DNA of 64,000 nucleotides from Lepidodermella squamata. Lineage: Eukaryota; Animalia; Gastrotricha. The stretch's first letter is position 1, and the number at the start of each line of letters is the position of its first letter. A program made the translations under genes and the position numbers. Below the pieces are notes generated by a model, which did not search any database, was not told where the DNA came from, and saw nothing but the letters and a program-made list of their open reading frames with translations. This document shows, piece by piece, positions 26,298 through 63,844 of the stretch. The stretch lies in the NCBI GenBank assembly GCA_047495785.1, contig JBLDXI010000009.1:2232001-2296000 (forward strand). The letters are read 5' to 3'.

Positions 26298-29200
26298 ATG
26301 AAGAATTGGCTTATCGCCGTCGCTGTGCTTTGCTTGATAAAAATTGAAGGTACAGGGGCGCAAACCACTGTTTCAACGACGAGAGCCTCAACAACTCAAA
26401 CCACTACTATGCCACCTTCGACACTGTCAACTACTCGACCTGCCACTGTAACATCCGCTGGTGCTACAACAAGCGCTGCTGCTTCGACGTTGACCACTTC
26501 TCGACCGGCTAATGCAACTACCGCAACATCAGCCGCTGGTACTGCAACAACAGCTCCTCCTTCGACGTTGTCCACTTCGCGAGCTGCCAATCTTACTACT
26601 ACACCAGCTAATGCTACAACCCCTGCAATGTCGACTAGAGCAGCGAATGTAACTGGAACAACTCAGTTACCACCATCGACGATCACAGCTGGTAATACGA
26701 CTACAACGGCTGCTAATGTAACTGGAACATCCCCACCACCTCCGTCACAGCCGACTTCGACCAGCATGACTACGGCAGGCAGAGCTGGTAATTTAACGGC
26801 TACATCACCTCCAGCACCCACCACGACAGCCCAACCGATAAACTCTACGGAAAAAATACCATTGAGTAATGTCACAGGAACAACAGCTAAAGCCGGGAAC
26901 ACCTCATCACCGGGGGCCCTTCCGAGCTCTCCCGTAAACTTGTCAACTCAGCCGATGAACTCAACTACAGCAGCTCCATTTTCGCCAACGACAAGAATTT
27001 TCACGACTGGGGCATCCCCACCATCCTCTGCTTCACCATCAAATGATACGGACTCGTCGTCTTCGATTAATGCGACAACCGTTCAGCCATCGAATTTCAC
27101 TAGGGCAGCGTCATCGATTGGTTCAACACATGATAATAGTTCCACCAAGTTGCCTCAATATTCTACGGCAGCGGCAGTCATGTCAACACCAGCTTCAAAC
27201 ACCTCAAGACCAGCCGGCCAATCGACTGAGGTCATATCAACCGTTAAACCAACAACCGGGCAAACGATGAAAGTCACCACCAATGCGTATTCTGTTTCCA
27301 CGAAGTTTGCAAATGCAACAAGTATGGCTCCAACGCGCGCCGCCGGAGAGACGACAAGGTTTTCTAATCAACCATCTACCGCTTCAAACGCTATGAATCC
27401 GTCGTCGACGAGACCTGTTGAAACAACCACCGCACGAAATGGCGCTCTGGTGGCGACACAGACAGCCTCTAACGTGGATCCTCAGAATCCAAGCTGTGGC
27501 AGAAGCGTTTGCGAAGCTCCTTTCTTTGTCAAAGGCGCGTCTGGTGAAAACGTGGCTGCTTGCTTGAGCGATAAGAAGCTGTATTTGTGCCAAAACAAAA
27601 CGACATACCAAGCATGGGCTAACGTAGCCGTTGTCGAGGAGATGCCATTGTATGGCGAGCTGAATTTCACGATTTTCGACAAGCAATACATGTTGAAAGG
27701 GACTCAGCTGTTCCAGTTTGCGACAAACGGTAGTAGCACAGCGATCAATGACAAAGAAAAATTCAAATGGTTCTTCGCTCGGTTCAAACGCCACGAAGGT
27801 GACAAAAGTTAAATTTAGAAGTCATGGTTCTATCACCATTTACCCTCGTTCTCAGGTAGGGGGTGGTTTTACAGCTCATGGACCTTTCCATCTTCAGATA
27901 ACAAGTACCTATTTGCAATAACCTAATAATCGTGATTTTCAGAGCTTCAATTTTTCAGAACCTCGGTACGACGCGCGTTTCATTTCAATGGAACAGGGTT
28001 TTGCGACTTGTCCACTACAGCAGATGGATCTCTCACTTCTGTTGCCCAAAACATGAACCAATACACACAATATTCATACTACAGGGTCGAATACGAAGGG
28101 CCTTTCAACCGCCGAGAGCCTCGCGTTTGGTTCACTGAGCAAACGAATACAAATGGAAAAGTGAATTTTGCTGAATTTTCCTACAATGGAACCTGGTTCA
28201 TTTGGACTGAAATGAATGGATATCAGCGTTACAATGGAGAGTTTACAGATAGGTAAGAAATCAGCATTGAGCTTTGGCGTTTGTTAATGTTAATGGAAAA
28301 TGTTGTCCTCGACCAGGATCACTGCTTCTGCAAGTCTACTCTCTAACATGACTTTCGCGGCAGCTAATGGAACCAAGTATCAGTTTATAAACGGAACAGT
28401 ACTTCGTCTGGGGCGAAATGGACTGCCGGTCGCTCCGATTCCATCTGACTTCGATTACCAGAAAGCCATAGATAGCGACCCGCTTGCCACTGGTGGTTAT
28501 TTCTTCAAATGGGATGCAGACTTGTCGAAGATGGGTGCTTATCGCGGCGCTGATGGGGCTTGGTGGGTCAATATAAACAAGGGAAAATTCCAGTTTCAGC
28601 GACGCCCTTTGACCTGTCAAGATTTGGATAAAAGGCCTCTCGATACAGTGCAGGCGGCCGAACCATCCCGCATCCCAACTGAAGATGTTATGAAGACAGG
28701 CTTTCAAGGTAAAAACCCGAAAAACGGAGAATTGATGGCAGATTTCTGAACATATAAATGTTTACAGTTTGTTCGCTGTCTTCTCCCAAATGTGAATTGG
28801 GCTACTACTGCCAGGATCTTTCGGCTGTTTACGATATTCGTTGTCGACTTGGGCTATGTGTTTTGAGTGAGATATCCTTTCGGAAGTTATTCCCAAATAG
28901 TTTTCTTTTCGTGCTAGATGAAACTGCTATTTGCCCTAGCATCAAGGGAAACTTCTCTAGCAATCAAAAGAGTAAGCTGCAACCTTTTCTTAAAACTTTT
29001 TCAAGCAGATTTTCAAACAGGATTTGGCCAGGCTTGTAAAATGAACTCGGACTGCTTCACTGGAATATGTAGCGATGGTAAATGCGCTTGCACGAACTGC
29101 ACTAAACCCTTGCCTGCACTGGAGTATGACTTAGATACTGGAGTTGTCATTTTCAAAGAGACATGCATCCGTAAGTGATTAGCCATTATAGGATGGGGAA

Positions 29201-31002
29201 AGTACACGCAACAGTTTTCTTGCAGCTTCGACTAGCGTTGTTGGAAGCCTGAATGATACTTGCGACTTGTGGGCCGGAGTAAAAAGAAAGGAATGCCCTT
29301 TCGGATCTGTATGTGCGAAATGTCCAGAGCTTCTCAACTCTCGATTTTCCCCAGCTAGATGCGTCGGTATGAAGGCTTTTCCTAGTACCATCTTCATTCA
29401 TTAATATGGTCTGATTTGATAGCATTGAAATCTGTCTCGACAAGGCCTGTCAATAAAGACCTGAACCCAACCGGGCAAGCAAAAAACACAACAGAGACAT
29501 CTGCGACAAATTCAACGAAAGATTCCGTGGTTGCAACAGGACCATGTGACAACTTCAAATGCGGTTACCTATCGAACTGTTCCGTCGTCGCGGGCATCGC
29601 CACATGCGTTTGCCCAAGAGGCTACAACTTGGAGCCGAATATGAAAGATTGTTACGGCTGGCGTCCGGCCACCCAAGGAGCCTGCAGCACAACTTGCGGT
29701 AATGGAATTATAGTCGCAACACGGCAGTGTGACAAAGTCAGCAAATCATCCGGTGTGGAGTGCGAGGGTAACTCTACAATCGTTTCAACTTGCGTTGGTG
29801 GCGATGAGTGCCCGGGTATTTATATTCCCTTGAATTAAACAATTTTTATTACAACCTGGCTTTTCAGTCGCGACCTCGTTGGTAACAAAGTCATGCCGCA
29901 TCGTTTTTGGCTCTTCAGTACTAACTGAAGAGTTGTTTACTGATCTCGCGGAGGACAATGTCAAATACGCAATCGCTCAGAAGTTGAACGAACATTGTGT
30001 GAATGACTCAGAAACCTTTGAGAAGGAATGCTGTCCGTCAAAGGCCTGGTCAGAAAACATCGCATCTCTTTTTTCCTCACCTGATGCAGCTGACTGTGTC
30101 GATTACAAAACTGGAATAACGATCCACAACAAATTCTCGAATGGCACGCATTTCAGTTTCTACATGATGGCATCGGGTAATCCTACGGGGACATGCTGTT
30201 CCGCGGCTCAACCATTGAAAAGCCGAAAAATTCGTGAAGCTCAAGCCGCCGCATTTGATCAGAACAGCCTTCAGACGATTCTGACTGACCCGACCTTGTA
30301 AGCAGTTGCTTTATTATCTTTTTAAACCTCTAATTCCCTCAATTAAGGATGGCGACAGTTACAGAAAGTGTCAAATACGTTGACCCTAATGTCGAGCCGC
30401 TAACTGCGGGAAGTGTTAAAACTGCCAGTGAAATTCGCCAACTTCAGGCAAATGTTAACAACAATTTCGCAACTAGCAATTATTCCTCGAACAATGCTGC
30501 GAAAGCTGTAAGATTTGAATTATATTCTTGTCTTCATTCTATTTTTAATGAAATAATTTTAAGGCTACAGTAAACGAGACTTCGTCCCGCTTGGAACCTT
30601 GGGTAATTGGAGTAATAGTGGCAGGGGTCGTCGCAATCTTAATTGCAGGAGGCGTCGTAGCTTACCTGTTAATCAGAAAAAAGTATTAACGTTACTTCTG
30701 ATCTGAATGAAATATCTATTACTGTGCCATGTTTCAGGAAATCATCAACTTCCAACAAAATTTATGTTTCCGAAAATTTCGGTACGAGGCAAGAATACTT
30801 ACCGCGAGTGACTTACACGGAGCGAGCTACGCCCAAGCCACGCGTGGTCGGTCAAACGTCACGCGTTAGATTCGCCCAGCCTGCTGTGCATCTGATTCCT
30901 GCGAATAATTATCCGCCGTATTACAATCAGTATCCGCAATCGCAATATGCCTATGCCCGGCCTCGTCTGCCTCATGATGACAACTACGCCATGAGCTCGT
31001 AA
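26298..31002 (+). CDS. Type I surface receptor paralog G1 (SP, ~370-aa mucin, novel domain, Cys-rich, EGF, TSP1, SEA-like/RxxR, TM, YPPYYNQYP tail)
   Basis: Signal peptide MKNWLIAVAVLCLI; RFKRHEG|RGWFY; DPLATGG; CDNFKCGY..CVCPRGYNLE (EGF); W..GACSTTCGNG..RQC (TSP1); SRKIR; EPWVIGVIVAGVV TM. Multi-exon. Confidence 0.85.
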
Positions 31003-31602: not shown

Positions 31603-31796
31603 AATTAATTAATGAAGTCGCCAGCTTGCTAAAGGTGTGATTTTAGGTATCAAATGTCAATGCTCAGCTGCGAATTAAAGGAATATTCAATATTAGCTGT
31701 GAATTAAGGAAAAATCCGCAAACATTTGTGATCATAAGATTGAAAAAGTATTTTGTAGTAGATCATCCCGGAAGCTCTCTTGATTTTACAATTAAA

Positions 31797-34700
31797 ATGA
31801 TCCGCACGTTGTTTTTCGCAATCGCTGCCACCACGTTTCACAATGCTCCGGCTCAGAAAGATACGACCTCTACTCCTATAACTACTCGAAGCGGCAGCTC
31901 CTCCGCAACAACCAGTGCCGTTCCAACGACAGCTATAGGTCGTGCAGCTCAAACTACAGGAAGCCCTATTTCGTCCATGCCATCGTCAGCTATGTCAGGA
32001 TCACCCCCTCCATCTTCAACCACCGGGGCAGCCCCTAGTTGGCTACTTCCTGTGAAACCTGCAGCTGCGACAAGTCCGCCTATTCCATCCTCATCACCAG
32101 GGATGACAACTAGGGCTCCCCTTCCCACTACAGCTACTAATCAAGCAATGATATCAACTGGAAAAACTGCACCAGTTGCAACTTCTAAACCTGCAGCTGT
32201 TTCAAATGCAGCAATGACCACACTGCCTCCTAAGACTAGAGATAGTCCGCTGGCCAGCTTACCATCGACCTCATCTGGAGAGATTCAATCATCCGAAAGA
32301 CCAGTTGTAACAACGAAGCCCATTCCTTCAACTACGCAACTGCCGACGACACCCGTAGTTACTGCGGCCCCGAAAATAGACATTTTGAATCCAACATGCG
32401 GGAAAAATTATTGCGAGGCGCCTTACGCAGTGAAAGACAAAACCGGAGAATATGTTACCGCATGCTTGAACGAGAAAAAGCTCTACCTTTGCCAAGACAG
32501 AACTACTTACGCGTATTGGACAAATGTAGCTGTTGTGGATGAAATCCCTTTGTTCGGAGACCTAACCTTCGCAATATTCAACGCATCATTCGTTCTTAAA
32601 GGCACAAATCTTTCCCAAATCTTGCCAAATGGCACCCGGATGCTCATCAAAGACAAAGACAGCTTCAAGTGGTTTTTTGTGAGATTCAAGCGGCATGAAG
32701 GTAAATCTTTGAGATTTCTTTACCAAAGTGATGATTGTTACTCTTTGAACAGGGAGAGGATGGTTTTACAGTTCTTGGCTGTTTCCTTCAGCAGATAACA
32801 AGTTTGCTAAGTGACATTTTGGTGTTATTGCATAAATTGCCCTTTCTTTTAACGCAGAGCATCATCCGTCAAGCGAGCCTTTTATTATGATGATAGTGGA
32901 TTCTCTAATCTGTCGACCGATGGTGAAGGGAACCTTGTCGCTGTGGCTCAAGCATCATCCCAATACCTGCAAGTCCCTTACTACAGAACAGATTATGATG
33001 TTTCAGCTGGTCGCCGAGACCTTCGCTGCTGGTTCACCGAAATGATACCATCTGGCGCAGATAAGACTCTAGCAGAATTGTCTTACAATGGAAATTGGTA
33101 TATTTGGACTGCAGCTTATGGGTATCAAAGTTATACTGGAGAATTTACAATGGGGTAAGCCCATTGATCTAAATATATCGCGCAGTTTACCATTGAATTT
33201 TTAACAGAATCAGTAGCTGTTCGATGCTTTTGTCAAACATGGCTTTCACTCTGGCATCCAATGGTACGAAGTTTCAGTTTATAAATGGTACAATATTTCG
33301 CCTTGGACGCAACGGCTCGCCCATAGCTCCTGTTCCATCTGACTTCGACTATCAAAGTGTTATTGAGAGCGATCCATTAGCTACTGGTGGATATTATTTC
33401 ATATACCCTTCTGATGCTACGAAGATTGGTGGTTATCAAAACGCGAATGGGGAATGGTGGGTGAACATCAACAAGGGAAAATTACAGCTACAAAGGCGAC
33501 CTCTGACCTGCGAGATGATTTCGAAAGATCTGCCGGCAACAACACAACCGTCCGATCCAGCCTGCTCGTCATCGGAAGATACTATGAGAACTGGTTTCCA
33601 ATTGTGTGAGCTATCATCACCCAAGTGCGACAAAGGCTACTATTGCCAGGATCTATCTACAGCTTACGGCATCAGCTGCCGTCTTGGCATCTGCGTTCTT
33701 AGTAAGTTGGCATTATATCTCCCCAATGATTACTTCATTTCTCATTGATGGTAGATGTGTCCGCGATTTGTCCAAATAAAGCTACGACAGACTCACTGAC
33801 GTTACAAAGTATGGCTCTGCTTTCAAATTGTGCAAATTACAAGCTTGATTTCAATTTCCAGAATTTGGCCAAGCTTGCAAAACTAATGCTAATTGTTTCA
33901 CCGGCATTTGCTCCAACAGCAAATGCTCCTGCACAAAGTGCACTAAACCATTGCCTACATTGGTGTACGACTGGGAACGTGAAACTTTAGCTTACAATGA
34001 ACGGTGTATCCGTGAGTCATTTTACAATTATCGATAACTGAACTAGGATCATACCCCGTACTATTCCAGCCTCAAGCAGCATTGTTGGGGGCCTAAACGA
34101 TACTTGCGATTTTTGGGCTACTGTTAGGAAGAAAGACTGTCCGTTCGGCGCCGTCTGCGCAAAATGCCCGGAGTTACTTAGCTCGCGCTTTTCTCCCGCA
34201 AAATGCGTTGGTAAGCAAAAATTGAAGCTATAACATAAAGCAGCGGAATTAAAATATTATACTCCAAGCTGTGAAATCCGTTACCAAGAAGCCGAGTGTT
34301 GCAGTCACAAGACCCCCGCCTACTAAATTAACCGACAATTCCACTACAAACAACAACACTACGCAAGAACTGATGAAGGGACCTTGTGACGACTTGAAAT
34401 GCGGATATTTAGCTAATTGTTCGATTGTTGCTGGAATGGCTACATGCATCTGTCCTAATGGTTACAATCTGGACCCGAATATGATCGATTGCTACGGCTG
34501 GCGGCCTGCTGTTACTCAAGGGTCTTGTAGCACGACTTGCGGCAACGGGGTACTTGTGAAGACCCGGCAGTGTGACAAATCAAACCAATCGTCGACTGTC
34601 GATTGCGAAGGAAATTCAACTCTAATTACGACTTGCGTTGGTGGAAGTGAATGTCCTGGTTAGCATTTTGTTTGAATTTCAAATTGCTCACTGACGCATC

Positions 34701-35865
34701 GTTTCTTTAGTTCCCACATCGATGGTGCAAACTTCATGTCGCATTTTATTTGGCTCTTTGATTCTCACCGAAGAGCTGTTCAACAATTATGTCGAAGATA
34801 ACGTGAAATATTCCATTGGTCGAAAATTGAACGATTTGTGCATGAATGACTCCGATATCTACGAGACGCAATGCTGTCCAACAAAGGGTTATTCATCTGA
34901 TCTCGCAAATCTTTTTGACAGCCCTGATGCAATCGACTGTATTGATTATAAAAATGGGCTGAACTTCTTCAACAAGTTTTCAAACGGCACACATTTTAGC
35001 TTCTATATGACGGCGGCTGGCAATCCGACCGGGACCTGCTGCTCCTCGGCCCAAACCATCAAGAGCAGAAAGGGGCGTGATGCCGATGCCCTTTCTTTTA
35101 ACCAAGACAGCCTTCAAACCATTCTGTCGGATCCCTCGTTGTAAGATGTTGATTTATCTAATTCTGATAATATCTATTCAACTGACTTTTAGAATGGCCG
35201 AGGTCACTGATAACGTGAAGCAGGTGGATCCTGATGTGAAGCCCCTGACAAAGGAAAGCGTTCAATCTGCTAGCGAAGTGCGAAGAACAAGTTTTACGTA
35301 TTCATCGGGCACATCGTCATCGAATTCATCTAACTCAGGAGCTCCGGTAAATATATAAATTATCGGTACTTTGGACTTTTACCATTGGTTTCAGGTTGCG
35401 TCTGTTGAGACTAAGTCAGGCCTTGAGCCATGGGCTATTGCTGTCATCGCTATAGGGGTTCTCGTAATTATAATTGGTGGAGGCATCATCTTGTTTGTAC
35501 TCCTTAAAAAAAGGCAAGGCATTTTTTGACTCCCACCATCATGTCAAATTTCTTTTTGATTTTCCAATTGAAGTAAGAAGCAAATATCCAACAAAATCCT
35601 CGCTCAAAACGCGGCAGTTGGTTATCGCGCCAATGATTCTCCTCGGAAGACTTACGACGAAAGAATGGTACCGATGCCCTCTGATGAAATGAGAAGAATT
35701 TCACCGGTCAAAATGACACAACCAACCGCTCAGATGTCTCGTGAGGCTTTTACAACAGGCGTAAGAGGCGGCTACCCACCTTATTACGGGCAATACCCGC
35801 CATCAGGTTTTACTATGGCACAGCCTCTTCCCACTCATGGCGGAGCTGGGAATTATCCTAATTAA
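31797..35865 (+). CDS. Type I surface receptor paralog G2 (closest to G1)
   Basis: MIRTLFFAIAAT signal; ~175-aa S/T/P region; same domain series; SRKGR; EPWAIAVIAIG TM; YPPYYGQYP tail; GC-AG intron 35514-35573. Confidence 0.85.
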
Positions 35866-38179: not shown

Positions 38180-41100
38180 ATGCCTTGGTCGTTTTGCCGA
38201 TTCATCTTTGCCTTTGGCCATCTGTTTCTATGCTTGTTCGCGGCGAATGATACCGAGTTTGCCAACGAAACATCTACAGTTCCGGATCTTAGCGGTTCGA
38301 CGTTCCAAACTGCCTCGGTGAATTGGTCTGATGGCACGGACGCAACAACGCAGAGTTACGAAAACGTCACCTTTGACACAAACTCAACTGATTTTGATGG
38401 AAATTTCACGGACTGGTTCAGCCAGAATGAAACTTGGTGGGGCAACACCACTGAAATAAACTGGAATCTTACTACATCAAATTTTTCCGATACGAATTAC
38501 ACAAATTATATTAATTCGACGTCAGCTACCGCATTGACGACTTCTTCGACGCTTTCCAGCATTTTGAACACGACTGTAATTATGACTACTACGACTAGTA
38601 CGACGTCAACATCAAAGGCTACACCTACCACTACGCCGACGACGCCTAATCAAACTTCAACTGCTACGAATTCGCCGAGCTATGACAGCTCAGTGAATTC
38701 TAGTAATACGACCACTTCAAGCAACCTGTTTAACTCATCAAGCTGGACTACAGCAAAATGGAATTCTAGTGATGTCTTGAACCTGACCAATCTAACATCT
38801 GAAGTTTGCAGTGGGCTTGATAAATGCAAATCAAAATTTTTTGACATGGAATTGAAAAATTCAACACTGGCAAAAGTATGTTTTGTGGCGACTGAACAGC
38901 TATTTTATTGTGACGCTAACAAAACCATGCAACCATTGGCGAATATCAGTAAAATCATTGACATTCCATGCTACGGCAATGTGAATTTCACTCTTCAGTC
39001 GACTCAGTATTGGTTTAATGAAAGCACATTGTACGTAATTACATCGGGGAATAATGTATCTGCAGTTTCCGATTCAAGTAAATTTCGATGGATGTCTCTT
39101 CGATTTAGGCCCAATGAAGGTATACATTTTCGATAACTTACGTTGAATTTCCTAACATTTTATTCCATTTTCTAGCGATGGGCTGGTTTTATTGCTCCGC
39201 TCCTCCTATTGTTGATAGAAATAACGAGTACTTGATGTTACCAACCTCGCCATTAGCAACCAACCTGACCTTAATCAAGCCATATTTCTACAACGGAACT
39301 TATTACGATTTGCTATCTATCGATTCTTTTGGAAACATCGTCAAAACAAAGAACACCGATCGCTACAAGCAGCCCATCTTCCTCGTCGACAGTCAAGAGT
39401 ACCAGTGTGATACATATACAGCGTGCTGTTGGTTCCAAGACTTAGTTAATATCACGTCTACAAATGGAACTAGATCGCAAGTTTTCACGGAAGTCGTTTA
39501 TAACGGTACATGGTATACCTGGTACAACAGTTCAAATGAGTACAAAATCTATGATGGCAATTTTTCGTACGGGTAGGTTCTATGAGGCGCTAATAATTAT
39601 TATTATTACCTGATTGTAATTATACCCTTGAAAGAATGATGCGCTGCGCTGGTTATCTATCAGATATGACGTTTGATGATGGCGATTCTGGGGACCAATA
39701 CGTCTTTTCCAACGGAAGCATTTGGTCACTTCCAAATGACGACAGTTTGCAAAGAATTATGTTTAAAGGCTTCGATTTCAACAGCTTGATTAACGATGAC
39801 CCATCGGCCAGTGGCGGGGTGTATTACGCTGACCTCAGTGAGCCTCCATTCGTCGCTTACTACCGTGCTTCGAACGGAACATGGAGAGTCAATATCAAAA
39901 ATGGGAAAATGAGTTTGCAGCTGAAGCCAGCAAATTGCAGCTCATTTGACTTTTCTGGCTCTTCTCAGTTAGCTTTATCACCATTTGGTAATGCTTCCAA
40001 TGCGAATAATGGAACAGACGAGCGTTATAACGCTCAGCCGTCCTGCAGCCAAACTGAGGACGTTTGGATAACTGGGGCTACAGTCTGTGAGTCGTTTCTC
40101 AAAGGAGCTTGATCATTATTTATATAAAAAATTCAAGTTTGCGACCCGGCGGTGTCAATGAACCCATGTGGGCCGGGATATCAATGCGCTAGTTTGTCGA
40201 GCATGGTGGAGATATCAGATTGCAAACTTGGAATATGCGTCCCAAGTAACGTGTATAAACTTAAAAATACCTGTTAAAATAAAGTCCAATTATTATCCAG
40301 ACGTCGTTGAAACTTGCCCCGCCTACTTTGTGAATCCCACATCGGGAAATGTAACCAACGGCTCAATCTCTACGAACAGCACAGCCTCCATGGGAAACAA
40401 ATCTTCCAATAATACCGGTCCGCTGATGAAGAAAAGTTGTCTGAGGCTTTTCTTGCGATTGTTGATGATGTCATTCTTCAATTTCAGGATTTGGTTCTTC
40501 CTGTCGATTCGCTTATGAATGCTTCACTGGCATCTGCCAGAAGAATATTTGCTCGTGCAACTCGTGCACGAAAGTCCTGCCCTACATTGCGTATGACCTT
40601 GTTCTAGGCAAAGAAACCTATGGAGAACGATGCATTCGTAAGATTCAATTTTCAAGGCCTATCGTGATATTTATCTATCGAATGCTAGCTTCGAATTCGA
40701 CGATCGGTGGCTTGAACGAGCCTTGTGACATGTGGGCTTCAGTAAAGACCAGAGATTGCGCTCTTGGACTGACATGGTGAGCGTTAAATAATGAAAGACT
40801 GTCGCAAATTTTCTTCTCAATTAGTGCAAAGTGCCCAGAACTGTGGAGTTCCAAGTTCGCGCAAGCAGTCTGCCTACGTCAGTGATTTTCTTGCATTTTT
40901 GCGGTGAAATAATACATTTCCTAATAGCATTAAAAATGTCTATGGATAATTCAACTTCAAATCAAGACGAGGCGTCGACTTCCGGGAATTCGGATCCTGG
41001 GATTATTTCTTGCAAAAACTTTCAGTGTGGCTACAAGTCCTCATGCGTTATGGTAGGACCGATGCCAACATGTAAATGCGACTCTGGCTACAACTTGGAA

Positions 41101-42475
41101 TCGAACATGGTAACGATTATTCTTAGTATTAAAAAGACTACATATTTGTATTTATACAGATGGATTGTTATGGCTGGAGGCTTGACGATGAGGGAACGTG
41201 TTCGGTCACTTGTGGAAATGGCTATAGGATGCGCCAACGAACTTGCGACAAAAGCAATGACTCCTCGGTTATCTGCGAGGGCAACTCAACCATACCCATA
41301 GCCTGCATCGCGCCAACCCAATGTCCCTGTATTAAGCTGAAATTTTTTTATTCTAAAATAACGTCTCTTTTTGCTTTGTAGTGCCTCCATCCGTCGCTTC
41401 TTCAGCCCTTTGCATCGCCATCGCTTCAAAAGTGTTGACTGTCGATCTATTCGAGAAATACGCTGAAAAAGACATGAAAGTTAAAGTCGCCAATTCCTTA
41501 AATAAGAAATGCTGGGTTGACTACAGCACCTTTGAAGCGGCTTGCTGTCCAGGCAAGGCATGGTCCTCTTCCCTCTATGGTATCAACGATTGCATCAGCA
41601 ATACAACGGGCGTTGTCTTCGTCGATAAATACTGGAACGGCACTCATTTCAGCTTTTGTTTAACTGCAACTGGCAATCCAAGTGGTTCATGCTGTCAGTC
41701 GGCAAAGGACGTCCCGAAAAGAAAACGTCGAGACGCTGATACCTTCACGTTCGATCAAAGCAGTCTGCAAAGCCTGATATCAAGTGATACGACATTACTA
41801 ACGCAAATGACGCAGACTTTCCAGAAAGTTGACCCTAATATCAAGCCTATTACGGCAGCGTTACTGACGACTACAACGACGACTACGACCACTACACCAG
41901 CGACAACTACGACATCAACTGTAGCTCAAGCTGCGACAGCTGCTCTGGTTCAAACTCAAGAAACCAAGAAGGAGCAGGCTGGTCTTGCTGGTTGGATCAT
42001 AGGTCTGATTGGCGGTATTCTGGGTGCGATCGCAATTGCTGTTGGTGTCGTTGTAATTTTGTATATCTTTGTTTTCAAGAAGTGAGCTGATTTTCTTTTC
42101 ATGGCGAGAATACCTTATGTTTTTTAACTCAGGAGGGCCACTCAGTCGAACAAAGTCAGTAGTGAAACAGCACAAGACATTGTCGTGCAAGTCGAGGAGC
42201 CCGATCAACCTGTTGAGGGGCAGGAAGCGTCCCCTCCATCCTCTCCAACGACTCCAAGAAAGAAACTTGATGACAGACTGGAAACTCTGCGCCGTAATTT
42301 TCCTAATTACGGCGAAGAGGCAGATGAAGAGGGCGATCATGGCGAAGAAAATAGCTTACAGCTGCCTCGACCCGACTCTTCGGCCAGAAGCGGTAGTAGC
42401 ACCAGCCATCATTACCCATTAGCTCATCATTCCAGCGCTGTGATGCCTAGATCAGCGGCTGAAGTCGATGAATGA
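38180..42475 (+). CDS. Type I surface receptor paralog G3
   Basis: MPWSFCRFIFAFGHLFLCLFAA signal; N-glycosylation/Thr-rich N-region; RFRPNE; YFYNGTYYD; CCWFQD; DPSASGG; EGF; TSP1; KRKRR; GWIIGLIGGILG TM; acidic tail. Confidence 0.85.
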
Positions 42476-50400: not shown

Positions 50401-51062
50401 GCAAGGCAAGCTCTCGCCGGAAAAAGCGAGCCTCTGCAACGGGTTACTTCGATCAAGACGCCTTGCGCGAAGTTATTACCGATTCGACAGTGTAAGCTTC
50501 TTCTGCTATTGCTGGTGTTGGAATAATTAATCGAGTTTACCTGTGTTTACAGCCTTGCAACCATGACCGCAGCTATGCAAACAGTAGACCCTAATATTGA
50601 TCTCCCCACAGTTACGAACGCCAAGCCGAACTACAAAGACGATGGTGCATCTGAATCACCGGTAAAATGAATGCAGCCACATCTTACTGGGTGAAATATT
50701 GATTTAATAGGCCTTGCGGGATACAAGTGGAGCCCTGCCTGAATGGGCTATCGGTTTGGCCGCTTCATTACCTGCAATATTTGTTGCAGGATTGGGCATA
50801 GGCATCGGCATTTATTGCGCGGTTAAAAAGTATCATGACTAACCTTTTTTTAAATAAGGCAAAACTAATTCGATCAATTTTGATCAGGAGTGGAATCGCA
50901 AAGGGAAAGAATGATAATAAGGTGGATTCGGCGAGGCCTATCCTCGAAATGCAAGAGCCGCCAATGTTGACATCAAGCAATTACGGTTACAACGCGCAAG
51001 CAGGTCTTTATAGTGAATCTCACATTGGCGGGGGAGCTCCGTATAGTTCTCGCAACTTCTGA
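47466..51062 (+). CDS. Type I surface receptor paralog G5 (no N-terminal mucin)
   Basis: MLRIILRFSALSIFLVCVT signal; PCRGNF; RLLPGSGYGSFYC; CCWFND; DPLADG; EGF; TSP1; SRRKKR; EWAIGLAA TM; GC-AG intron 48705-48758. Confidence 0.85.
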
Positions 51063-51237: not shown

Positions 51238-54200
51238 ATGTTGAATAACGGAAATTCAGTGAAATTAGCGGTTATATTCCAGCTCATCACAGTGCTGCAG
51301 TTGGGGAAATATGCCCTTGCACAAGGTGGGCTCATTTTATAGTTTGCTGATGATGTATACTAGGTCATTTTAACAGATTCAACCGCAGCTGTTACTACAG
51401 CGGCGACAACTCAGCCAACCGCTGAACCAACCACCTTAAAAGTCACTCAACAAACTCAGCAAACTCAGCAGCCCAATGCCGACACTACATCTGGCGATGC
51501 TACAACTGCTGTTGCTACGAAAGCAACTACGACAATATCTATTTACGCGGTAGATAAAAAGCAGTGGCTCAAGTGCGGTAAGCCCGCTTATTTTCATAAT
51601 ATACAATTATTCAAAGGTGGGCAATCGAAACAGGAAATGACTATTGCGACACACCGGGGGTATCATATGTAACTGCCACCGAAAGCTGGTGCTTTGACCC
51701 CGATGTTGTTGAGCTTTATTTTTGCGATAATTCAACTGACGTTAGCAGTTGGTCCCCGTACCCTGCGACGTCAAGTCTTAAAGAATTCCCAACTAATGGC
51801 AATTTCACATTCACGGTTGGCTCAGCAAATTACTGGTTGTACGGGATTCGGCTAAAAAAATGGAATGGAACCGACTGGTTGAATACAACAAATGATTATG
51901 TAATCCGAGCTTTTCTGCCTCGATTACGACCAGGAGAAGGTTAATGGGTCTAACTTTGTGTACCGCTTTTATATCTTTACATTCTTAGGAAGTGGATTTT
52001 TCTACTCAAAATTTATGTCAAGCACCACAGCCTCGGCAGCCCCAACAATGTCAGCCTACTATTACAACGGCACGTATTATACGGTGTCTATAAAAGGGGA
52101 TACCGGCAGTGTGACTCCTGTTGCGAAAACCGTCTCACAAGTAGGGAATCTGACATGAGGCGCCTTCAATTATCATGGTTTTAATTTATTTTTTATTAGT
52201 ATGATCTTTATAACATGGAACCGTTCATTACTAACACCGAAGAGGGGTGCATGCTCTCGGTTTGTTGTTGGTACAAAGACTTCTACGTTGCCTCAACAGG
52301 GGCGAAGAAGTTCACAGAGATAAAGTTCAATGGCTCATGGTATGCATGGTACAATGGGGCTTATCAGGTTTGAAAGAATTTTTTAAAGCGAATCGACCAT
52401 ATCTTTATTGATTAATTCAGCCCCATCAAAGCGATACTGTATTATCAAACAAGTAAGACTTTAAGGCGATCTACGTGAAACTCCGTATTATGAGTGATTT
52501 CCTATTAGCACTATGGCTTGCCTGAGATACTTTTCCGATCATAGCTGGAAGTCAATGGATGGAACAAAGAACAAATTCACTAATGGATATGCTTATCAAC
52601 TAGATACGAGTGGCAAAACGTCTTCCGTTCTTGACACTTCAACCGAATCCTTCTGGAACTCTCTTGGTTTTGATCCTTTGGCAACTGGCGGATTTTACAG
52701 ATTCAACGGTTTGAAGCCATAATATATCGTGATTAATCCTGTTTCCAATTGCGTGCTTATAGGATCTACTATCATTTATACCAATCTAACCGGTAATTAT
52801 GAAGTCACGATCACATCCGGGAAAATCCAATACAAGCGCCAACCTCCGCTTTGCTCATCCGGGCGATGGCGGGAGCCCTACAGAACCCAGTGTTACCAGG
52901 AGCCTGATAATTACCGAGTGACCACCTGGATAAGTATGAGAATGCTTCAACGCACTCAATAGATCTAATCAATGTATTCCTTTTCTATTGTATAGCGTGT
53001 GATCCATCTGAGTCACCTAGCATCTGCGGGACTGGCTATAAGTGTGTGCAATTTCCTAATTCAATAGGAAATATGGGATGTTCGAAAGGATTCTGCTTGC
53101 CTGGTGAGTTTTCAACAGGGTCTTTAGATTGTACCTTGGTTATTTGGCCTTTACCTTTACCAGACTATTCTGTTGCCTGCGGGGATGCTGTCGCAACTAC
53201 CACGGCGCAGGCTGCAACGACGACGATGGCTGCAACTACCACGGCAGCAAATGTAACTGATGCGCCAACTACGACTGCTGCTAAAGCTGTTTATCGTGGA
53301 TTAAAGAGTAAGCAGTTAATGCACGAGTCAGTTCAATCCAATAACATGAATTCCTGAACTAGAATACGGAGACAGCTGCTCGAATAGCTCGGAATGCTTT
53401 ACAGGTACTCAGTGCTCAGCAAATAAATTCTGAAAGCATTATATCCGAATTTCACCGTTCGCATCAAGGATATTGTGATTCAACCTGTGCTTGCTCAAAC
53501 TGCACCAAAGTTTTGGCTGGTTTCGACTACAATTTTCGAACCAATTCCTTTCTATATTACGAACGGTGCATCCGTATGTTAATACATTTATTTTATACCA
53601 ATATTCGTTTACAATGAAATCTTCCAGCGAAAAACAGCACAATAAGTGGATTAAATGAGCCATGTAGTATGTGGTCGAAGGTTGGTGACAAGTTTTGCGG
53701 AACCGGACTATTTTGCAGTAAAATTTTCTATAATTGAATCTTTGATTTGTATACATTCGCAACGCTGTTTTCTTATAGCGAAATGTCCCGAAGTTTGGAA
53801 CAGCAAATTTGCTGATGCTGCTTGCGTCCGTAAGATTGCTCAAAAACTGCTTTATTGATTATCGGTTCTATGATCTTCCTTTTTCAACGGTGCAGCTCTT
53901 CAACTACCAGTGACTGCCTGCTCTGGTTATACTTGTGGTTACAAAGCTAACTGCTCGGTAGTTGGAGGAGTACCAAGCTGCATTTGCGCACCTGGATACA
54001 ACCTGGAGCCTAACATGGTAGAAATTCATCTGTTCAATCTTTTTCCGAATACCCTATTTGAACATTTTCAGCGCGACTGTTATGGCTGGTCAGATGAAAG
54101 CTATGAGAAGTGCAGTGTTACCTGCGGAGTTGGAATGACCATTATGACAAGAACGTGTGACAAAGCGAAAGAATCCACTGCTTCCTGCGATGGAAATTCA

Positions 54201-55356
54201 TCAATGATATTGCCATGCGTCGGAGGACTTCAATGTCCCTGTATGTCGCAGTCGTAGTTTGATTTCTTTATTTTCATTATCCTGCCTCTTTGTGCCACAG
54301 TACCTTCAGCATACGTTTCAAAAGCTGTTCGAGTGGAAATCAAGTCCAAGGTCATTGACGTTCCTACTTTTGACAACGCGCTAGCCCAACCTTTGACAGC
54401 GACATTGCAACAGAGTTTGAATAGTAAATGCCAAACAGATAAGGATACATTGTTAGTTGCGATTTCTTTCATTCCAATTTAATTTCGCGGGCTACCTATA
54501 TTTTAGTGAAAATAAGTGTTGCACCGGTAAGACTTGGTACTCTGGAATCTTGAATTCGGACTGCATCAGTCAAACCAACGGCATCGTCTTTACTAACAAA
54601 TACAGTGACGAAGAGACGTTCAGCATGTATGTAATGGCACAGGGAAACCCAACAGGATCTTGCTGCAAATCAGCATCAGATAAAACAAGAAAGAAGCGAG
54701 CTACATCTGATTTATCTGCTGCGTTTGATGCAAATTCTCTTTCTACAATCCTCAACAGCGATTCCGTGTAAATACTTCTGGTATTTAGTTATTTATTGTT
54801 AATTAAATGCGATCTTATGTTAGGATGAATCGAATTATTGAGACTGTCAGAAATGTGGATCCTTCAGCTGTTATATCACAAGCTGCGCCAGCTACGACTA
54901 CTACAACTACCACTGTTGAGTATAAGACAGCGAGCACTGTCCAGGTAATATTTCAACGTATGATCGTCTTTATTTCACGAAAAAATGTAACAATAGGTTG
55001 ATACGGCATTTGCTTGGGAACCATGGGTAATCGGCGCTATCGCAGGAGGTGGAGCTGCATTCCTATTGATCGTTGCGGCAATTGTCATTGCTTTGGTATG
55101 CAACGCTAAGAAGAAAAAGCTTGCGGCCAAAGTGTTACCTCAACCCGCCGGCGTGCGGCCTCCAGTGGAAGTTCGAAGTGGCCATGAGCTCAACCATCAG
55201 CAATATGGCGGATATTACGGAAAGCCTACTGGCAGCGAAGGTTTAAATTTTGAATCCGCCGATTTGGCTGGGGAAAAATATCCACCATACTTCGGTCAAT
55301 ATCCCGGCGGACCGGCTAACTCAAATCTTGCACCCACTCAGGCTTATGGCTATTGA
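51238..55356 (+). CDS. Type I surface receptor paralog G6
   Basis: Signal exon from 51238; RLRPGEG; YYYNGTYY; DPLATGG; EGF; TSP1; TRKKR; WEPWVIGAIAGGG TM; YPPYFGQYP tail. Confidence 0.85.
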
Positions 55357-55783: not shown

Positions 55784-58700
55784 ATGACAAGGCACCGGAT
55801 TTGGGGGCTGTTGATACCAGTGTTATGTTTTGTCTTGAGAGCTGCTGGGCAAGATGCGACGAGTGAGTTTATCCACGGAGCAAATTCCTGAAATTAAATT
55901 AATCCAATTAGCTACGGCAGCGGCTACGACGACAACTCCTCCTACAACAACAGCATCTTTGTACGCTAAGGATGGCCAATTACTATGCGGTAATCTTATA
56001 AGGGCGCTTACGAATAATACCATTCTTCATTTGAATATTCCTAAAGTTAACGACTATTGCGGCGTAAATCAAGTGTCCTACATTTATCCAGTCGGGCCTA
56101 CTGCCCCAGAGGGATGGTGCTTTGACCCTACAACTTTGGTCTTGCAATATTGTGACAACTCAACAGATGGTGGCTGGTTGCCCTATCCTGGCACGGAAGC
56201 TTTGGACGACATTCCCTGTCACGGGAACTTCAATTTCACCATTATGGGAACCAAATACTGGCTAAAAGGCAAGAATCTCCTTCAACTTTCCGGATCAGAC
56301 TGGGTCAGCTCGACAAGCGAAAATGTTACCACGGCTTACATGGGACGCCTTCGGCCCAACGAAGGTAAGATTTTCCCAAGATGCAGCCCACGTCTTTAAT
56401 TCGCTATGCTATGCAGGTTCTGGATCATTTTTCTGCAAATATTCTGGAAGTATTTTCATGAATGATGAACCACAGTATGCAGCCTACTTTTACAATGGCA
56501 CCTACTACGATTTGTCCGTGAATGACAACGGTGTTGTAATCAAAACGGCCCAAAACATCACGCAGTACATGCTCTACAACATTCAGCCTTATATTTCAAA
56601 ATCTGAAGACGGCTGCAAGAGTCCAGTCTGTTGCTGGTTCAAAGATTACTTTAGATCACCGCTGGACAAAAAATCATATTGGACTGAAGTAATGTATAAC
56701 GGGACGCATTGGCTCGGACTGATCAATTCAGCTTATCAGCTGCACGAAAGCGACTCAAATTTAAACTTGTAAGTTCGGAAAATGTTAAGGGCTTATTATG
56801 AAATAATACGTGTACCCCAGCTCTTACCCATGCGTTAAGCAATTTTCCGATCAAACCTTCAAAACTCCGAGTGGGAGTCGATACAAATTCAATAACGGTG
56901 AGCCATATCTGCTGGATTCAAATGGCCAGTTGACGTCGACAATGCTCGATGATCTCAGCCAGCTTGATTATGATCCCATTGCAACGGGAGGCTACTATCG
57001 GCATAATGGAACAGCTATGATCTATACCAACGCAAGTGGGCGCTACGATGTGACCATCAGCGGGGGCAAATTTGTCTATCAGCGTCAATTGCCGAAGTGC
57101 GAGTCTGGTAGATGGCGTCAAAATATGCCAGCTCAATGCGACACTACATCAGATTTGTACCGCGTCACGAGCAAAATAGGTTAGGAGTGTAGCTTCATTA
57201 ATCGTGCTTTTCTCTCATTGCAAAACTTTTCAGTGTGTGACCCGGCGGCTAATGACTGTGGCAATGGCTACCTCTGCAAAACGTTCCCCTCTTCAATCGG
57301 CGACGGAATGCAGTGTAAAAAAGGCTTCTGTGTGCCAGGTGCGTTGATGAAATGTGAAAGCAGAAAACAGAATACATGAATGACTTGTTTTTTCAGACCC
57401 CTCGAAAGTTTGCCCTGTATCAGCTGCAACTACGACAGCGGCCCCAACAACCACCGCTGGTAACTCATCTAGCTCGGCAGTTGTCTCTAATGGCCTTAAA
57501 AGTGAGAATTCTTCGTATAAATGCTGATTTTATTATAATATTATGTGCTGGTAGAATATGGGCAAACCTGCAAAGCAGATTCGGACTGTTTCACAGGTAA
57601 GATTTAAATCAACAGCTTCTCACGTGTCACGTGTTCTCATGTCGCATCAAGGAATATGCACAAGTGGAACTTGCTCGTGTACTACGTGCACAAAGGTTCT
57701 AACTTCGTACGATTACAACTTCCTCACGGATCAGTTCATCTACGTTGAAAAATGCATTCGTAAGTTACCTGGCTCATTTTATGGGGCATTTCAAAGCTTC
57801 TTCTAATCTTAGCTAGCAAAAGTGCAGTTGGAGGACTAGGTGATGCTTGTAATATGTGGGCAGATGTCCCAGAGAAGGCGTGCGGGTCCGGTCTTTTGTG
57901 CGGTATGTAAAACTAAATTTACCTCTAGGATGTACAATTCATAATTATTGACTTTGCAGCTAAATGTCCAGAAGTTTGGAAGAGTAATTTTGCCGATCCA
58001 ACATGTGTCGGTAGGAAAGGGCTCTCAAAATACTCTCAGAATGTTAAGACGATATTCTGTTTAATTTAGCTTTAAAATTGCCGCAAACCGATTGCCCTTC
58101 AAATGCCAATACGTGTGGCTACAAGGCAACATGTACAATGATTGGAGGCGTGGCAACATGCATTTGCCCCTCAGGCTATAACCTGGAGTCAAACTTGGTA
58201 ATTGATCTTTAACTTAACTTTTAATAAACTGTGAATCATGATTCTTGATCAAGGTGGACTGCTACGGCTGGGTTGCTGGCTCTTCGGGGTCTTGCAGTGT
58301 TACTTGCGGAACTGGCGTTACAACAACGCTAAGAACATGCGATAGAGCACCTAATTCGACTGCGCAATGCTCCGGAAGCACAAATGTGACATCGCCCTGT
58401 AGTACAGGCCAACAGTGTGCATGTAAGCGTTTGAAAATTAGAGATAAGATCCATAATCACATACGTGTTCTATTAGTGGGCGATGCTTACGTTACGAAGG
58501 CTGTCTACTTCCAGATAAACTCAGTAATCATCAACGTTCCAGTGTTTGACAGATCCTTAGCGAGCAACTTGATGAGTAACCTTCAAAAAGGCCTTAACGC
58601 AAAATGTGTTAATGAAAATACAACCTTGTAAGCTCTTTGAACCTCGATGTAACTAATTTTTTAAGCCTGCATTCTCAAACAGCGAAAGCCAATGTTGCCC

Positions 58701-59556
58701 AGGGAAAAAATGGATCCGCGGTATTACGAACACTGATTGTATCAGTCCTACGAACGGAGTCGAGTTTCTTAGCAAATTCAGCGACGGAAAGGTTTTCAGC
58801 ATGTACATCCTTGCGCGGGGTAATCCGACAGGAGTCTGTTGCAAGAACTCTCCGGACAAGACAACGAGCCGCCGCAAGCGTCAGGCTGATCTTACCACTG
58901 CTTTTGATGCTGGCCCTTTATCTGAGCTTCTGAACAGCGAGGCGATGCAAGTTTGCTTCATCTTGAAAATTTTGCAATGAACCGACTTTAATATAGAATG
59001 AACAAATTTCTCGATTCTGTATTGACAATTGATCCCGATGCCACAGTTCCAAAGGTATGCGTAGCTTCCTCTAACCGATGTTTCATTTTATTCGTTTCTT
59101 CAGACGTCCCCGGCAACAACGACGACCACTACAACTGTCGCCACAAAAACGGAGGCAGTGACTGGATTCGTATGGGAGCCCTGGATAATAGGGGCGATCG
59201 CCGGTGGTGGTGGAGGCCTTATTCTTATTATCGTGATTGTCGTTGTGATAGTCCTATGCATGAATAAGAATAACAAAAAGGGAAAGAAGCGGAACAAGGT
59301 CGGTCCAGACATGGGTGGCGCTCGCGTCATGCCGATGGACATGCATATGGTCAACCCACAGATGAACGATTTTGGCTACCCGCAAAATGGCTATTACGGG
59401 CAGCCAAATGAAGTTTTCACTCCGACCGGGAGCCAGGCAAGGCTGCGGACCGCAAATGGATCGGTTTCAGCCAATTTACAGCCATATCTTGGCCAGCAGT
59501 ACCCAGGCGCTTCTCAGAGGTCGAGCTTAGTTGCAACTGCAGCGCATGGTTATTAA
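55784..59556 (+). CDS. Type I surface receptor paralog G7 (closest to G6)
   Basis: MTRHRIWGLLIPVLCFVLRAAG signal; RLRPNEG; YFYNGTYYD; DPIATGG; EGF; TSP1; SRRKR; WEPWIIGAIAGGGG TM; PYLGQQYP tail; GC-AG intron 58947-58996. Confidence 0.85.
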
Positions 59557-60263: not shown

Positions 60264-63200
60264 ATGCTGCGAAACCTAATAATTGCAGTCTTTCTCATCT
60301 CTGGATCACTGGTCTTTCCGAACAAAGGTAAGAGTTGAAAATATTGCCACAGATCTCCCAAATTATCATTGGTCCTACCAGGGCAAGACGCAACATGTGA
60401 TTACAATTTATGCACCGGTTCGCTATTTTACACCATCACCAGCTCTGGTGATTATTTGCTGAGCTGCTTGTCACCCAGCTATCAATATCAGATTTGTGAC
60501 AGTGTTACCTTAACTTTCAAGCCGTTTAACAACGACACAGCCATAAAAAGCCTCCCCTGCGCAGGGAATTTCAACTTCACGATTCTAGGACAAAAGTATT
60601 GGCTGAAAGGCGGTGACTATCTCAAGTACAACGGTTCACAATGGAGCAACATTTCAATGGACGCAACGTTCTACAACTATATGACTCGACTGAGGCCAAA
60701 CGAAGGTTTTCGTCTTAATCCCATTAAGTTCGATTCCATTTCAATTTATTTTTTCAGGAGTCGGTTATTTCTATTGTACGGCGTACGTCAGCGAAACCTC
60801 CCTTGATACTTCTATCGCGGAAATAACGTCGAAGCAAGTTGCCTTTTACTACAATGGATCGTACTATGATGTAAGGACGAGTTCGACTGGCTATCTATAC
60901 CCTGTCGCGCAGAAAGTCTCCCAATACGATCTATACGTATTCCCTTTCATGTCAAGATCCATTGCTCCTGCCTGTTCCGATATGTTTTGCTGCTGGTTCC
61001 AAGACAATGCCGTCACGAAAAACAATGGGACTGTGACCTACGCAGACTCATCCACAGATTTCGTTTTCAATGGAACAAAATGGCTTTACTGGGTAAACGG
61101 CAAATATGAGTTATACACTGGAGAAGTGAACTGGGGGTAGGTTACCCAGTAAGAGAATTTAGCCTGCATTCTGACTTATTTTCCCGTAGAATTGCTCAAT
61201 GCTCGGTGTACATTTCAAATTTCGCATTCAAAGATGTCAATGGAACGAGGTACAAAATCATAAATGGAACACTCTATCAATTGGATAGTCAATCTGGCGA
61301 GGTTGTAGGTTCTTCGGATGTATCCTATTGGGAATATGTTGATAAAGATGCCCTGGCTACTGGCGGCTTTTTCTACACAGAAACTGACTCGCCAGCGGGC
61401 TTCTGGAAGAATAGCTCCGGAACGTACACAGTGTCGATAAAACAGGGGGATTACTATACGAAACGGCCTCCACCAGCTTGTAAAATAAGTGATGCTGAGT
61501 ATTACCAGTACACAAATCCTTCTTGCGCGGCCCTTCCTGACGAGTATAAAATCACTGACGTCACAATATGCGATCCAACCGACAAATCGAATTCGATTTG
61601 TGGCGACTATTATTATTGCGCGCCGATTCCTTCGCAAGTGTTAGCAACGTGCTCCTTGGGCATCTGCAGGCCTGACTATGCGCAAATATGCCCAACTCCA
61701 GCCCCTGTGGATCCCACTGCAATAGCTGCTGATAGATTGAGAAGTATAAGCTAAACTTCGGGTTAAACAGGAAATCTAACCTATTTATCTTACAGTTTTC
61801 GGTGAATCGTGCAGTGAAGCCAGCAATTGCTATTCGGGAATTTGCAGCGGAGGGAAATGCACATGCTCATCATGCACCCAGGTCGTTCCCCAGATAGATT
61901 ACGATTCGATTGGTCGACATCTGTATTATCGCGAGCGATGCTTACGTAAATAACGATAATTTGTTTAATTTGTTTAATTTAACTTGTCAACAGCAAAAAA
62001 TGCCACCATTGGTGGGCTCGGTGATGTTTGCAACATGTGGAGCGATGCGCCGCAAACAACATGCGGGTCAGGGCTTACCTGCTGTAAGAACTTGAATTAT
62101 ATAATTGCCTCGCTAAGATTTTTTTCATCGATTAGTCAAATGTCCCGAATCATACAAGAGTTCAGTCGTCCAGGCTAAATGTGTTTGTAAGTGCTTTATG
62201 AATTAACAAAAGATGTTTCATTCACGAATAAATTTTCAGCCTACGATTTGCCATCGAATAACTGCCCAAGTGGGACTCGAACTTGTGGTTTCAACGCGGC
62301 TTGTAAAGTTATTGGGGGAGTTCCTGTTTGCATGTGCACAAAAGCTGGCCATATTCTCGACAGCAACTTGGTATTTTTACCTTGTCACACGGAGTTTCAT
62401 TACTCTATTATGCCTTATCGACAGATTGATTGCTACGGATGGACAGAAACTAAAGGCTCGTGCAATGCGACATGTGGAGCTGGTTTTTATGAAGTCACCC
62501 GAACTTGCGAAAAGGCGAGTGGATCAAAAGCTGTGTGTCCGGGGCCTTCATCCTTTACCGTCGCCTGTTCAACCGGTGTTGAATGCCCACGTAATCTAAC
62601 TTTTTATCGCATAACTGTGGGCTTTATTATTCATCAAAAACAGTGCCGAAGGAGCAGCTTTCTAAATCTGTTTTCCTGGAGGTCGTCACGAAAGTCATCA
62701 CAGTTGATCTATTTGATAAATATTTGGAATCACCAGTGAGACGCGTAATCGCATCTGGCTTGACGACGAACTGCGTCAAAAACTCAACCGCGTTTGAAAA
62801 TCAATGCTGCCCTGGAAAAGTGTGGGCTGCGGGTATCACAGATACTGACTGCATAGGCGTCTCCAATGTTCAGCTGATAAACAAGTTCTACGATGGTGGC
62901 AGACTCAAATTCTACATTAGCGCGCAAAACAGCGGAACCAGCAAATGCTGCTCGAACGCTGCGGCGAAAATGTCACGCCGAAAACGAGCGACGTCAGTCG
63001 ATATCGACCAGTCTACTCTCGCCTCTGTTGTTTCGAGTCAATCAGTGTAAGTATCGATCAAATTGTTTGAACTCAATTTCATGACATCATTTTCCCCAGC
63101 GTTAATGATATCACCGGTGAAGTACAAAAAGTGGACCCCGATGGCAAGGTTCCTGGAAGCTCTATCATTATAGCCTCCGCGGTCACAACTGCCTCTCCGT

Positions 63201-63844
63201 CCACTGCTGCAGCGGCTGGGGCTAACTCAGGGGCTAATTCGGGATCTGGGGCTTCGACTACTAATGCTGCGTCAGCCGTCACAGCTCAGGCTGTTGGTAG
63301 TAGTGGTTCCTCATCGGTAACCGTTTCCCCCATTTTTTGCATCTTGTATTTACACATCTTCAATTTCAGTCCTCAAGTGGCGGATTGGAAGGGTGGGTTA
63401 TTGGTGTTATTGGTGGAGTAATTGGTCTTGTCGTGGTTGGGGCTGTAGTCGGAGTGATCGTTTTCTGCATCATCAAGAAAAAGTAACCAGGCTTTAATAC
63501 AGCCTTTTTGGCCATTATTACATTTTTCTCTCAGGAATTCTGGTAAGGTGGCAAATGCATCAGATCCACCAACCCCTTATGACCATATCCAAGAAAGTAC
63601 TGAGAATCACAAAATAGCGTCAGCCCGACCTACTACAGTCGTGCGACCGGGAACAGTTGTCCAGCCTGAATCTGGTCTCAGGCCAAGCACCCGAGCTTTT
63701 CCTCGATCTGCTAGGCCGGATGATCATATTGCACCTGGCGGCGAACCACCAAATCCAAACGACCCGAATTATCCTGCCTACTTCGGCAGATATCCGTCTG
63801 CCAAGCCTGAAGCTTTGGCACCACAGTCAGTGCATGGACATTGA
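60264..63844 (+). CDS. Type I surface receptor paralog G8 (no N-terminal mucin)
   Basis: MLRNLIIAVFLISGSLVF signal; PCAGNF; RLRPNEG; CCWFQD; DALATGG; EGF; TSP1; SRRKR; EGWVIGVIGGVIG TM; YPAYFGRYP tail. Confidence 0.85.

Follow-up and report, generated by a model that had tools for sequence, protein, structure and literature searches.

A tandem array of predicted single-pass receptors with a furin-type site in a SEA-like juxtamembrane module in Lepidodermella squamata

Background

Notch is cleaved by furin at S1 in its SEA-like heterodimerisation domain and consists of two chains thereafter. THSD1-type single-pass receptors combine a beta-rich region at the N-terminus with a single TSP1 repeat and a single transmembrane helix, and we know of no SEA-like module or furin site in them. 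In SEA transmembrane mucins and IMPG2 the ectodomain is cut inside the SEA-type domain (PMC9478142), and SEA-like domains, the membrane-adjacent domain (MAD) of PCDH15 among them, are proteolytic switches when a structured neighbour is present (PMC6586460). Here we compare these systems with a locus in a 64,000-nt stretch of Lepidodermella squamata DNA (approximately 44% G+C, referred to below as the window) in which eight related genes, G1 to G8, stand in tandem on the plus strand.

We describe the genes, the architecture of their products, the conservation of a furin-type site and the folds predicted, and show how rare the family is. Our preferred reading, to which we assign a probability of about 0.55, is that the genes encode type I membrane glycoproteins of a single, lineage-restricted family, which would act as furin-processed, two-chain adhesion or sensor receptors. 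A role in adhesion or sensing is plausible by analogy only.

Results and discussion

Eight colinear genes

Translations of the G2 exons compared with the window by tblastn gave eight colinear sets of matches on the plus strand, with E values of 1e-7 to 1e-65 for the conserved exons. Each of the eight genes carries, once and in the same order, the motifs DPLATGG, FG..C..C.TG.C, C.C..CTK, DCYGW, CC.GK.W, R..R and VDP followed by a hydrophobic transmembrane segment. The first-pass annotation had proposed eight co-oriented paralogs with a common domain order, with which the tblastn sets and the motif table agree. The array ends it gave (26298 and 63844) are exactly the ATG of G1 and the stop of G8, and its closer pairs, G1/G2, G3/G4 and G6/G7, were recovered in per-domain identity matrices.

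Exon-intron models were built by a dynamic-programming search over GT-AG sites using paralog similarity, a bonus for the transmembrane segment and a splice matrix trained on 63 introns of the first pass (44-66 nt, modal length 52-53 nt), while the signal-peptide exon was picked by eye, including that of G4. The models are approximate predictions and comprise eight genes of approximately 940-1370 amino acids (aa) with 11-16 exons each (Table 1). A sequencing run initially considered as candidate RNA was rejected as transcript evidence because it behaves as low-coverage DNA: joints between opposite strands were present and splice joints absent.

The array could in principle be decayed or non-functional, consisting of pseudogenes or of gene-model artefacts. 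No RNA run containing the locus was found, and several small exons in the G6 and G7 models are provisional. However, all eight genes have every conserved block open and every motif present once, the proportion of nonsynonymous differences (pN) is far below that of synonymous differences (pS), and additional short introns account for the problem spots in G6 and G7, as at the G7 FG..C exon, which was found in another frame. We therefore consider decay extremely improbable.

Three paralogous multi-pass membrane genes, each with two partial Pfam matches to DUF7789, sit before and inside the array, one of them in the G2-G3 interval. None was listed on the metagenome contigs described below, and the linkage to the array may therefore be local.

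Domain architecture

The predicted proteins consist of a signal peptide, a stretch rich in Ser/Thr/Pro or in N-glycan sites, the N-domain, Cys-rich units, an EGF-like domain, TSP1, a juxtamembrane module, the VDP segment, a Thr-rich stalk, a single transmembrane helix and a tail of 60-120 aa. The Cys-rich part comprises a small knot-like unit and one of approximately 12 cysteines, often separated by a Thr-rich linker, and modules of the G3 type matched no Pfam family. Only TSP_1 and weak EGF types were recognised by Pfam in these proteins. TSP_1 (PF00090) was above the gathering score of 21.6 in seven of the eight genes (G1-G4 and G6-G8, 21.8-35.0 bits), as annotated at first, and the G5 domain, which is split by an intron, scored 16.5 bits as a fragment. 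The EGF assignment holds as far as the usual Cys pattern is concerned, with Pfam scores under the threshold. A mucin region had also been assigned to the array; it is approximately 400 aa in G1, shorter in G2-G4, short and vestigial in G6 and G7, and absent from G5 and G8. Five of the tails and the outside homologs share a Tyr-rich motif, Y-P-[PA]-Y-[YF]-G-[QR]-Y-P, and an A-x-G-Y-like C-terminal end.

A passive coat or matrix anchor would share much of this architecture: the proteins would form a mucin-like glycocalyx or attach matrix, the furin cut would serve maturation or shedding only, and the tail sorting and not signalling. Ser/Thr-rich stretches, the numerous N-x-S/T sites, the nearness of the architecture to transmembrane mucins and IMPG2 (SEA, EGF and transmembrane helix; PMC9478142) and short tails that are not conserved family-wide are consistent with such a role. 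G5 and G8, however, keep the N-terminal head and the chassis behind it without any mucin stretch, and the tail motif is conserved between organisms in most members, so that we regard a passive coat as unlikely, if far from negligible.

A furin-type site in a SEA-like juxtamembrane module

The juxtamembrane module of approximately 150 aa gave an AlphaFold model with a pLDDT of 87.6 and a pTM of 0.81. The modelled topology is ferredoxin-like and runs through a beta strand, a long kinked alpha helix, two beta strands, a low-confidence loop and a second kinked alpha helix. The R-x-x-R site lies in this flexible beta3-alpha2 loop (pLDDT approximately 62), and no other loop of the model is of low confidence. 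The arginines at P4 and P1 are invariant in all eight genes (profile A1, made from the juxtamembrane exon) and are kept in six outside homologs (P0001-P0006) from other organisms. Six conserved cysteines lie N-terminal to the site and none is found between the site and the transmembrane helix in any gene. Since all conserved cysteines precede the cut site, the cleaved protein would be two chains joined by the fold alone.

In an exhaustive structural search the top match of the module was PCDH15 MAD12 (6c10_A, Z 8.9, rmsd 2.5 over 94 residues). The best eight matches, with Z of 7.2-8.9, were PCDH15 MAD12 (five entries), CELSR1, cadherin-23 MAD28 and a nuclear-pore chain, and the next reached 5.1. 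Values for IA-2, the MUC16 SEA domain and dystroglycan were 3.9-4.6, with MUC16 SEA at 3.9, and Notch was absent among the structural matches listed. The juxtamembrane profile A4 found no match among PDB sequences and an Atlas search missed the MAD match. The SEA self-cleavage motif G/S-V-V-V was not found between strands 2 and 3, where the beta2-beta3 turn reads N-G-T or similar (A1). A SEA-like character of the module is suggested by its predicted fold only. The structured neighbour of the module in the array proteins is TSP1.

An N-domain without known relatives

Alignment A3 joins six uninterrupted N-domain copies from metagenome contigs with pieces of exons from the window genes. The AlphaFold model based on it has a mean pLDDT of 86.7 and a pTM of 0.74 and is made up nearly entirely of beta hairpins, with two short helices. 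Foldseek against the PDB returned nothing at E < 1e-3 (TM-score <= 0.18), the ESM Atlas shape search gave TM-scores of at most ~0.28, and the best Z among 48,161 chains searched exhaustively with VIA-align was 4.3, reached only on fragments 40-70 residues long. Nothing credible was found in Pfam, and the N-domain and juxtamembrane exons had no usable match in the ESM Atlas by sequence. Within the limits of prediction, the N-domain is a domain without known relatives, and the novel domain proposed at this position is upheld by the lack of a Pfam, PDB-sequence or fold match.

Three candidate likenesses of the N-domain were rejected. Beta-propellers (Foldseek TM-score 0.12-0.18) share local hairpin resemblance and not a common fold, RHS/YD repeats (Atlas TM-score 0.25-0.29) had no Pfam RHS match, and a weak YJU2 match in a PDB profile search (E 1e-4) lay on a Cys-rich stretch and was taken as chance.

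The D-P-L-A-T-G-G motif of the N-domain is retained throughout the array and its cysteines vary. In A3 the PC.GNF and G.FYC cysteines are both lost in G1, G2 and G6. G1 further lacks all three cysteines of C...CCWF and the R-C cysteine, and G2 still has a single cysteine of the CC pair as well as the R-C cysteine. Cysteines are thus lost in pairs, which fits real disulfides in a folded domain. The head is modular, with one, two or three N-domains in the outside homologs.

Relatives outside the window

Profile A1 was run exhaustively, with no word filter, on a library of 1.84 billion representative proteins. Seven true matches (E 5e-15 to 1e-34) and two chance matches were returned; the seven are unnamed open reading frames (ORFs) known only from two ENA metagenome assemblies, and no named relative was present among the proteins searched. 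A word-index search with an 804-aa ORF containing two N-domains matched the ORF itself only, profile A3 added one ENA ORF, and two JGI metagenome scans contained no relatives. The libraries do not include the window's own proteins, so absence elsewhere is suggestive and not proof.

The contigs of these relatives (L001-L005) are eukaryotic, up to 32 kb long and 39% G+C, and carry family members in tandem and colinear. L001 has two of these genes and L004 three, at 26-42% identity to G3 and G7. The relatives are much poorer in introns than the genes of the window. Family members on L004 and L005 adjoin a Somatomedin_B/TSP1_spondin/SBSPON_C gene and a tyrosine-kinase gene respectively, neighbours that mark these contigs as animal DNA. 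Together the searches support an undescribed, lineage-restricted family, in agreement with the first-pass annotation, which had inferred a lineage-specific system and had not recognised the architecture as that of a named family.

Divergence and polymorphism

Among the folded parts, the N-domain diverges most between non-sister genes, with 23-34% identity relative to 23-50% for the Cys-rich unit, 39-59% for EGF-TSP1 and 30-44% for the juxtamembrane module. In the three sister pairs pS (Nei-Gojobori) was 0.69-0.97, which is saturated, and pN was 0.13-0.59. With synonymous sites saturated even between sisters and pN clearly lower than pS, the duplications are old and the proteins constrained, and the initial description of the array as diversifying is not supported. 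The saturation of synonymous sites means that dN/dS is not computable.

The divergence of the head, and its variable copy number, could indicate innate-immune or environmental pattern receptors in which the N-domain is lectin-like or microbe-binding and expansion of the family widened the range of binding. The structural searches, with the best scores reported above, gave no similarity to any lectin fold, however, and the age and constraint of the duplicates also argue against such receptors, which we consider quite unlikely.

One DNA run contained a second G3 haplotype at half depth (39513-39681 and 41857-42464), indicating that the source population or individual is heterozygous at G3. The second haplotype differs by 8-9% over an intron, with scattered changes in the stalk and tail. 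The differences listed lie mainly in intron 39573-39634, the stalk and transmembrane region and the tail, and only a few affect the N-domain, a pattern that is weak evidence against a hyper-polymorphic recognition head. An allorecognition or gamete-recognition locus with diversifying, highly polymorphic members had been suggested for the array. In outline, a cluster of single-pass receptors whose distal domain varies resembles such loci, and one DNA run shows two haplotypes. The suggestion is nevertheless unsupported given the signs of purifying selection and the position of the G3 differences, and the comparable tandem set in another organism, at the identities given above, points to an old and stable family. 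We find a recognition locus of this kind very unlikely.

Proposed mode of action

If the genes encode furin-processed receptors, as we prefer, a variable and heavily glycosylated stalk would display the beta-rich, disulfide-bonded N-domain as a ligand- or partner-binding head. This head would sit on a constant chassis of Cys-rich modules, EGF, TSP1, the SEA-like ferredoxin-fold membrane-adjacent domain, the transmembrane helix and the short tail. After a furin-type cut the mature protein would be held together by its fold only, like Notch once cut at S1 or the SEA-domain mucins, and a pull on the head, or binding by the head, may release the ectodomain or expose a stub. The Tyr-rich tail may then relay a signal in most members. 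We infer all of these steps, from cleavage and the two-chain state to the binding role, force-dependent release or shedding, and signalling.

Several points weigh against this scheme. The furin-type cleavage is deduced from the motif only. A search of sequencing runs for the locus found two DNA-like runs without splice joints and no RNA run, and the Tyr-rich tail motif is absent from G3, G4 and G5 in the motif table of the eight genes. The VDP segment, a candidate for the fourth and last strand of the SEA-like fold, lies outside the modelled piece. According to the note of the search tool, a Z of 8.9 barely exceeds the values that unmatched models often reach, and Foldseek missed the MAD match. 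Pfam SEA (PF01390) gave no match at E up to 1, so that the SEA-like label of the first-pass annotation applies at the level of the predicted fold, through the MAD- and SEA-like structural matches, and not at that of the Pfam family.

A broader proposal is that the family is one branch of a larger receptor system of this lineage, in which a chassis of TSP1, furin-cut SEA-like module and transmembrane helix would carry swapped heads, one of them without known relative and in one to three copies. The system would function as a force-gated shedding switch resembling that of Notch, with an origin independent of Notch and the cadherins. We offer this as a tentative idea and consider it unlikely.

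The array contributes an extracellular domain of approximately 310 residues that has a confident predicted structure and for which the libraries searched contained no relative in sequence or fold, and a new setting for a SEA-like juxtamembrane 'switch', behind TSP1 and with a convertase site replacing self-cleavage. If cleavage and force-dependent release are true, the logic of Notch, dystroglycan and the tip-link cadherins would have been invented independently in a poorly studied animal group, and the family could provide compact new modules for synthetic receptors. If they are not, it would be one more lineage-specific family of surface proteins, which are common in invertebrate genomes.

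Other features in the window

A Helitron-like element with a PIF1 helicase and Pif1 2B domains is present on the minus strand, and a plus-strand ORF is an inverted repeat of the C-terminal part of one of its ORFs. The window also includes a Piwi/Argonaute gene and a Gpi1 ORF (PIG-Q-type component of the GPI-GlcNAc transferase, Pfam E 8e-58). One member of a run of long minus-strand ORFs begins with a zinc-finger-like C-x2-C...H-x4-H motif and another looks by eye like transposase-derived proteins; the ORFs of this run had no Pfam match at E 1e-3.

Table 1 Positions of the array genes, their main elements and other features of the window, and of features on related metagenome contigs
Feature	Position	Strand	N-domain	Furin-type site	Transmembrane helix	Remarks
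G1	26298..31002	+	27483-28623	30224-30235	30597-30674	~1368 aa, 12 exons; Ser/Thr/Pro-rich N-terminus
G2	31797..35865	+	32385-33517	35067-35078	35428-35505	~1160 aa; sister of G1
G3	38180..42475	+	38798..39944 (~310 aa, three exons)	41720..41731 (RKRR)	41978..42076	~1249 aa, 11 exons; reference gene
G4	42883..47256	+	43819-44933	46581-46592	46884-46952	~1238 aa; sister of G3
G5	47466..51062	+	47577-48613	50418-50429	50744-50824	~940 aa; no N-terminal mucin-like stretch
G6	51238..55356	+	51636-52880	54688-54699	55021-55101	~1090 aa; model imperfect at some small introns/exons
G7	55784..59556	+	56049-57106	58870-58881	59179-59262	~1000 aa; sister of G6; model imperfect at some small introns/exons
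G8	60264..63844	+	60387-61487	62976-62987	63391-63474	~1019 aa; no N-terminal mucin-like stretch
G3 Cys-rich modules	40140..40876	+				Knot-like unit, linker, ~12-Cys unit ending KCPE.W
G3 EGF-like	40930-41109	+				
G3 TSP1	41160-41327	+				Pfam TSP_1 35.0 bits, cutoff 21.6
G3 juxtamembrane SEA-like/MAD-like module	41384..41860	+				Extends through conserved VDP motif
Tyr-rich tail motif	G8 63770..63796	+				Starts G1 30910, G2 35773, G6 55279; degenerate in G7
DUF7789 genes	15996-17316, 25216-26197, 36444-37900	+				
Gpi1 ORF	2813-3745	-				
Piwi/Argonaute gene	~6500-9700	+				PAZ 7298-8236, Piwi 8856-9662
Long-ORF run	9728-13342	-				
Helitron-like element	17751-23138	-				
Inverted-repeat ORF	19076-19666	+				Repeats part of ORF 20098-21585 (-)
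Family member	L001 11394-15647					Single long ORF with three N-domains
Family member	L004 7491-9905					Single long ORF with two N-domains
Neighbour gene	L004 1075-3398					Seems to be without N-domain
Somatomedin_B/TSP1_spondin/SBSPON_C gene	L004 16031-17252					
Tyrosine-kinase gene	L005 16463-17248					

Comparison with known systems

The array proteins share a beta-rich N-terminal region, one TSP1 repeat and one transmembrane helix with THSD1-type receptors, which had no sequence match in any search. The MADs of PCDH15, cadherin-23 and CELSR1 are closest to the juxtamembrane module in predicted structure (Z 7.5-8.9, rmsd 2.5-3.0, 87-96 residues) and have the same ferredoxin-like order, kinked helices and position just outside the membrane (10.1101/460097). 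Sequence identity to them is 11-14%, however, and the array proteins have TSP1 as the neighbour and no cadherin repeats, with no cadherin family found in the Pfam scans. The six conserved cysteines and the furin-type site in the beta3-alpha2 loop were likewise not found described for MADs.

The Notch NRR also combines a juxtamembrane SEA-like domain, with a furin-type site in one of its loops, and a Cys-rich structured neighbour. This likeness suggests a non-covalent two-chain receptor with a force-sensitive proteolytic switch (PMC6586460). It is a resemblance in mechanism only, since the array proteins have a short tail and no LNR, ankyrin or RAM domain; LNR repeats, many EGF repeats and an ankyrin domain were not detected by Pfam. 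SEA transmembrane mucins and IMPG2 are similar in their Ser/Thr-rich region, SEA-type fold, EGF-like domain, single transmembrane helix and short tail. They differ in that the N-domain and TSP1 are absent from them, whereas the array proteins have neither a Pfam SEA match nor the G-S-V-V-V motif and a cut would need a convertase. Because neither cadherin nor LNR repeats were found, nor a match to the SEA profile or the self-cleavage motif, the family is a member of none of these groups, but it works most like the furin- or self-cleaved SEA-type receptors, namely the Notch NRR, the SEA mucins and IMPG2, dystroglycan and the tip-link cadherins.

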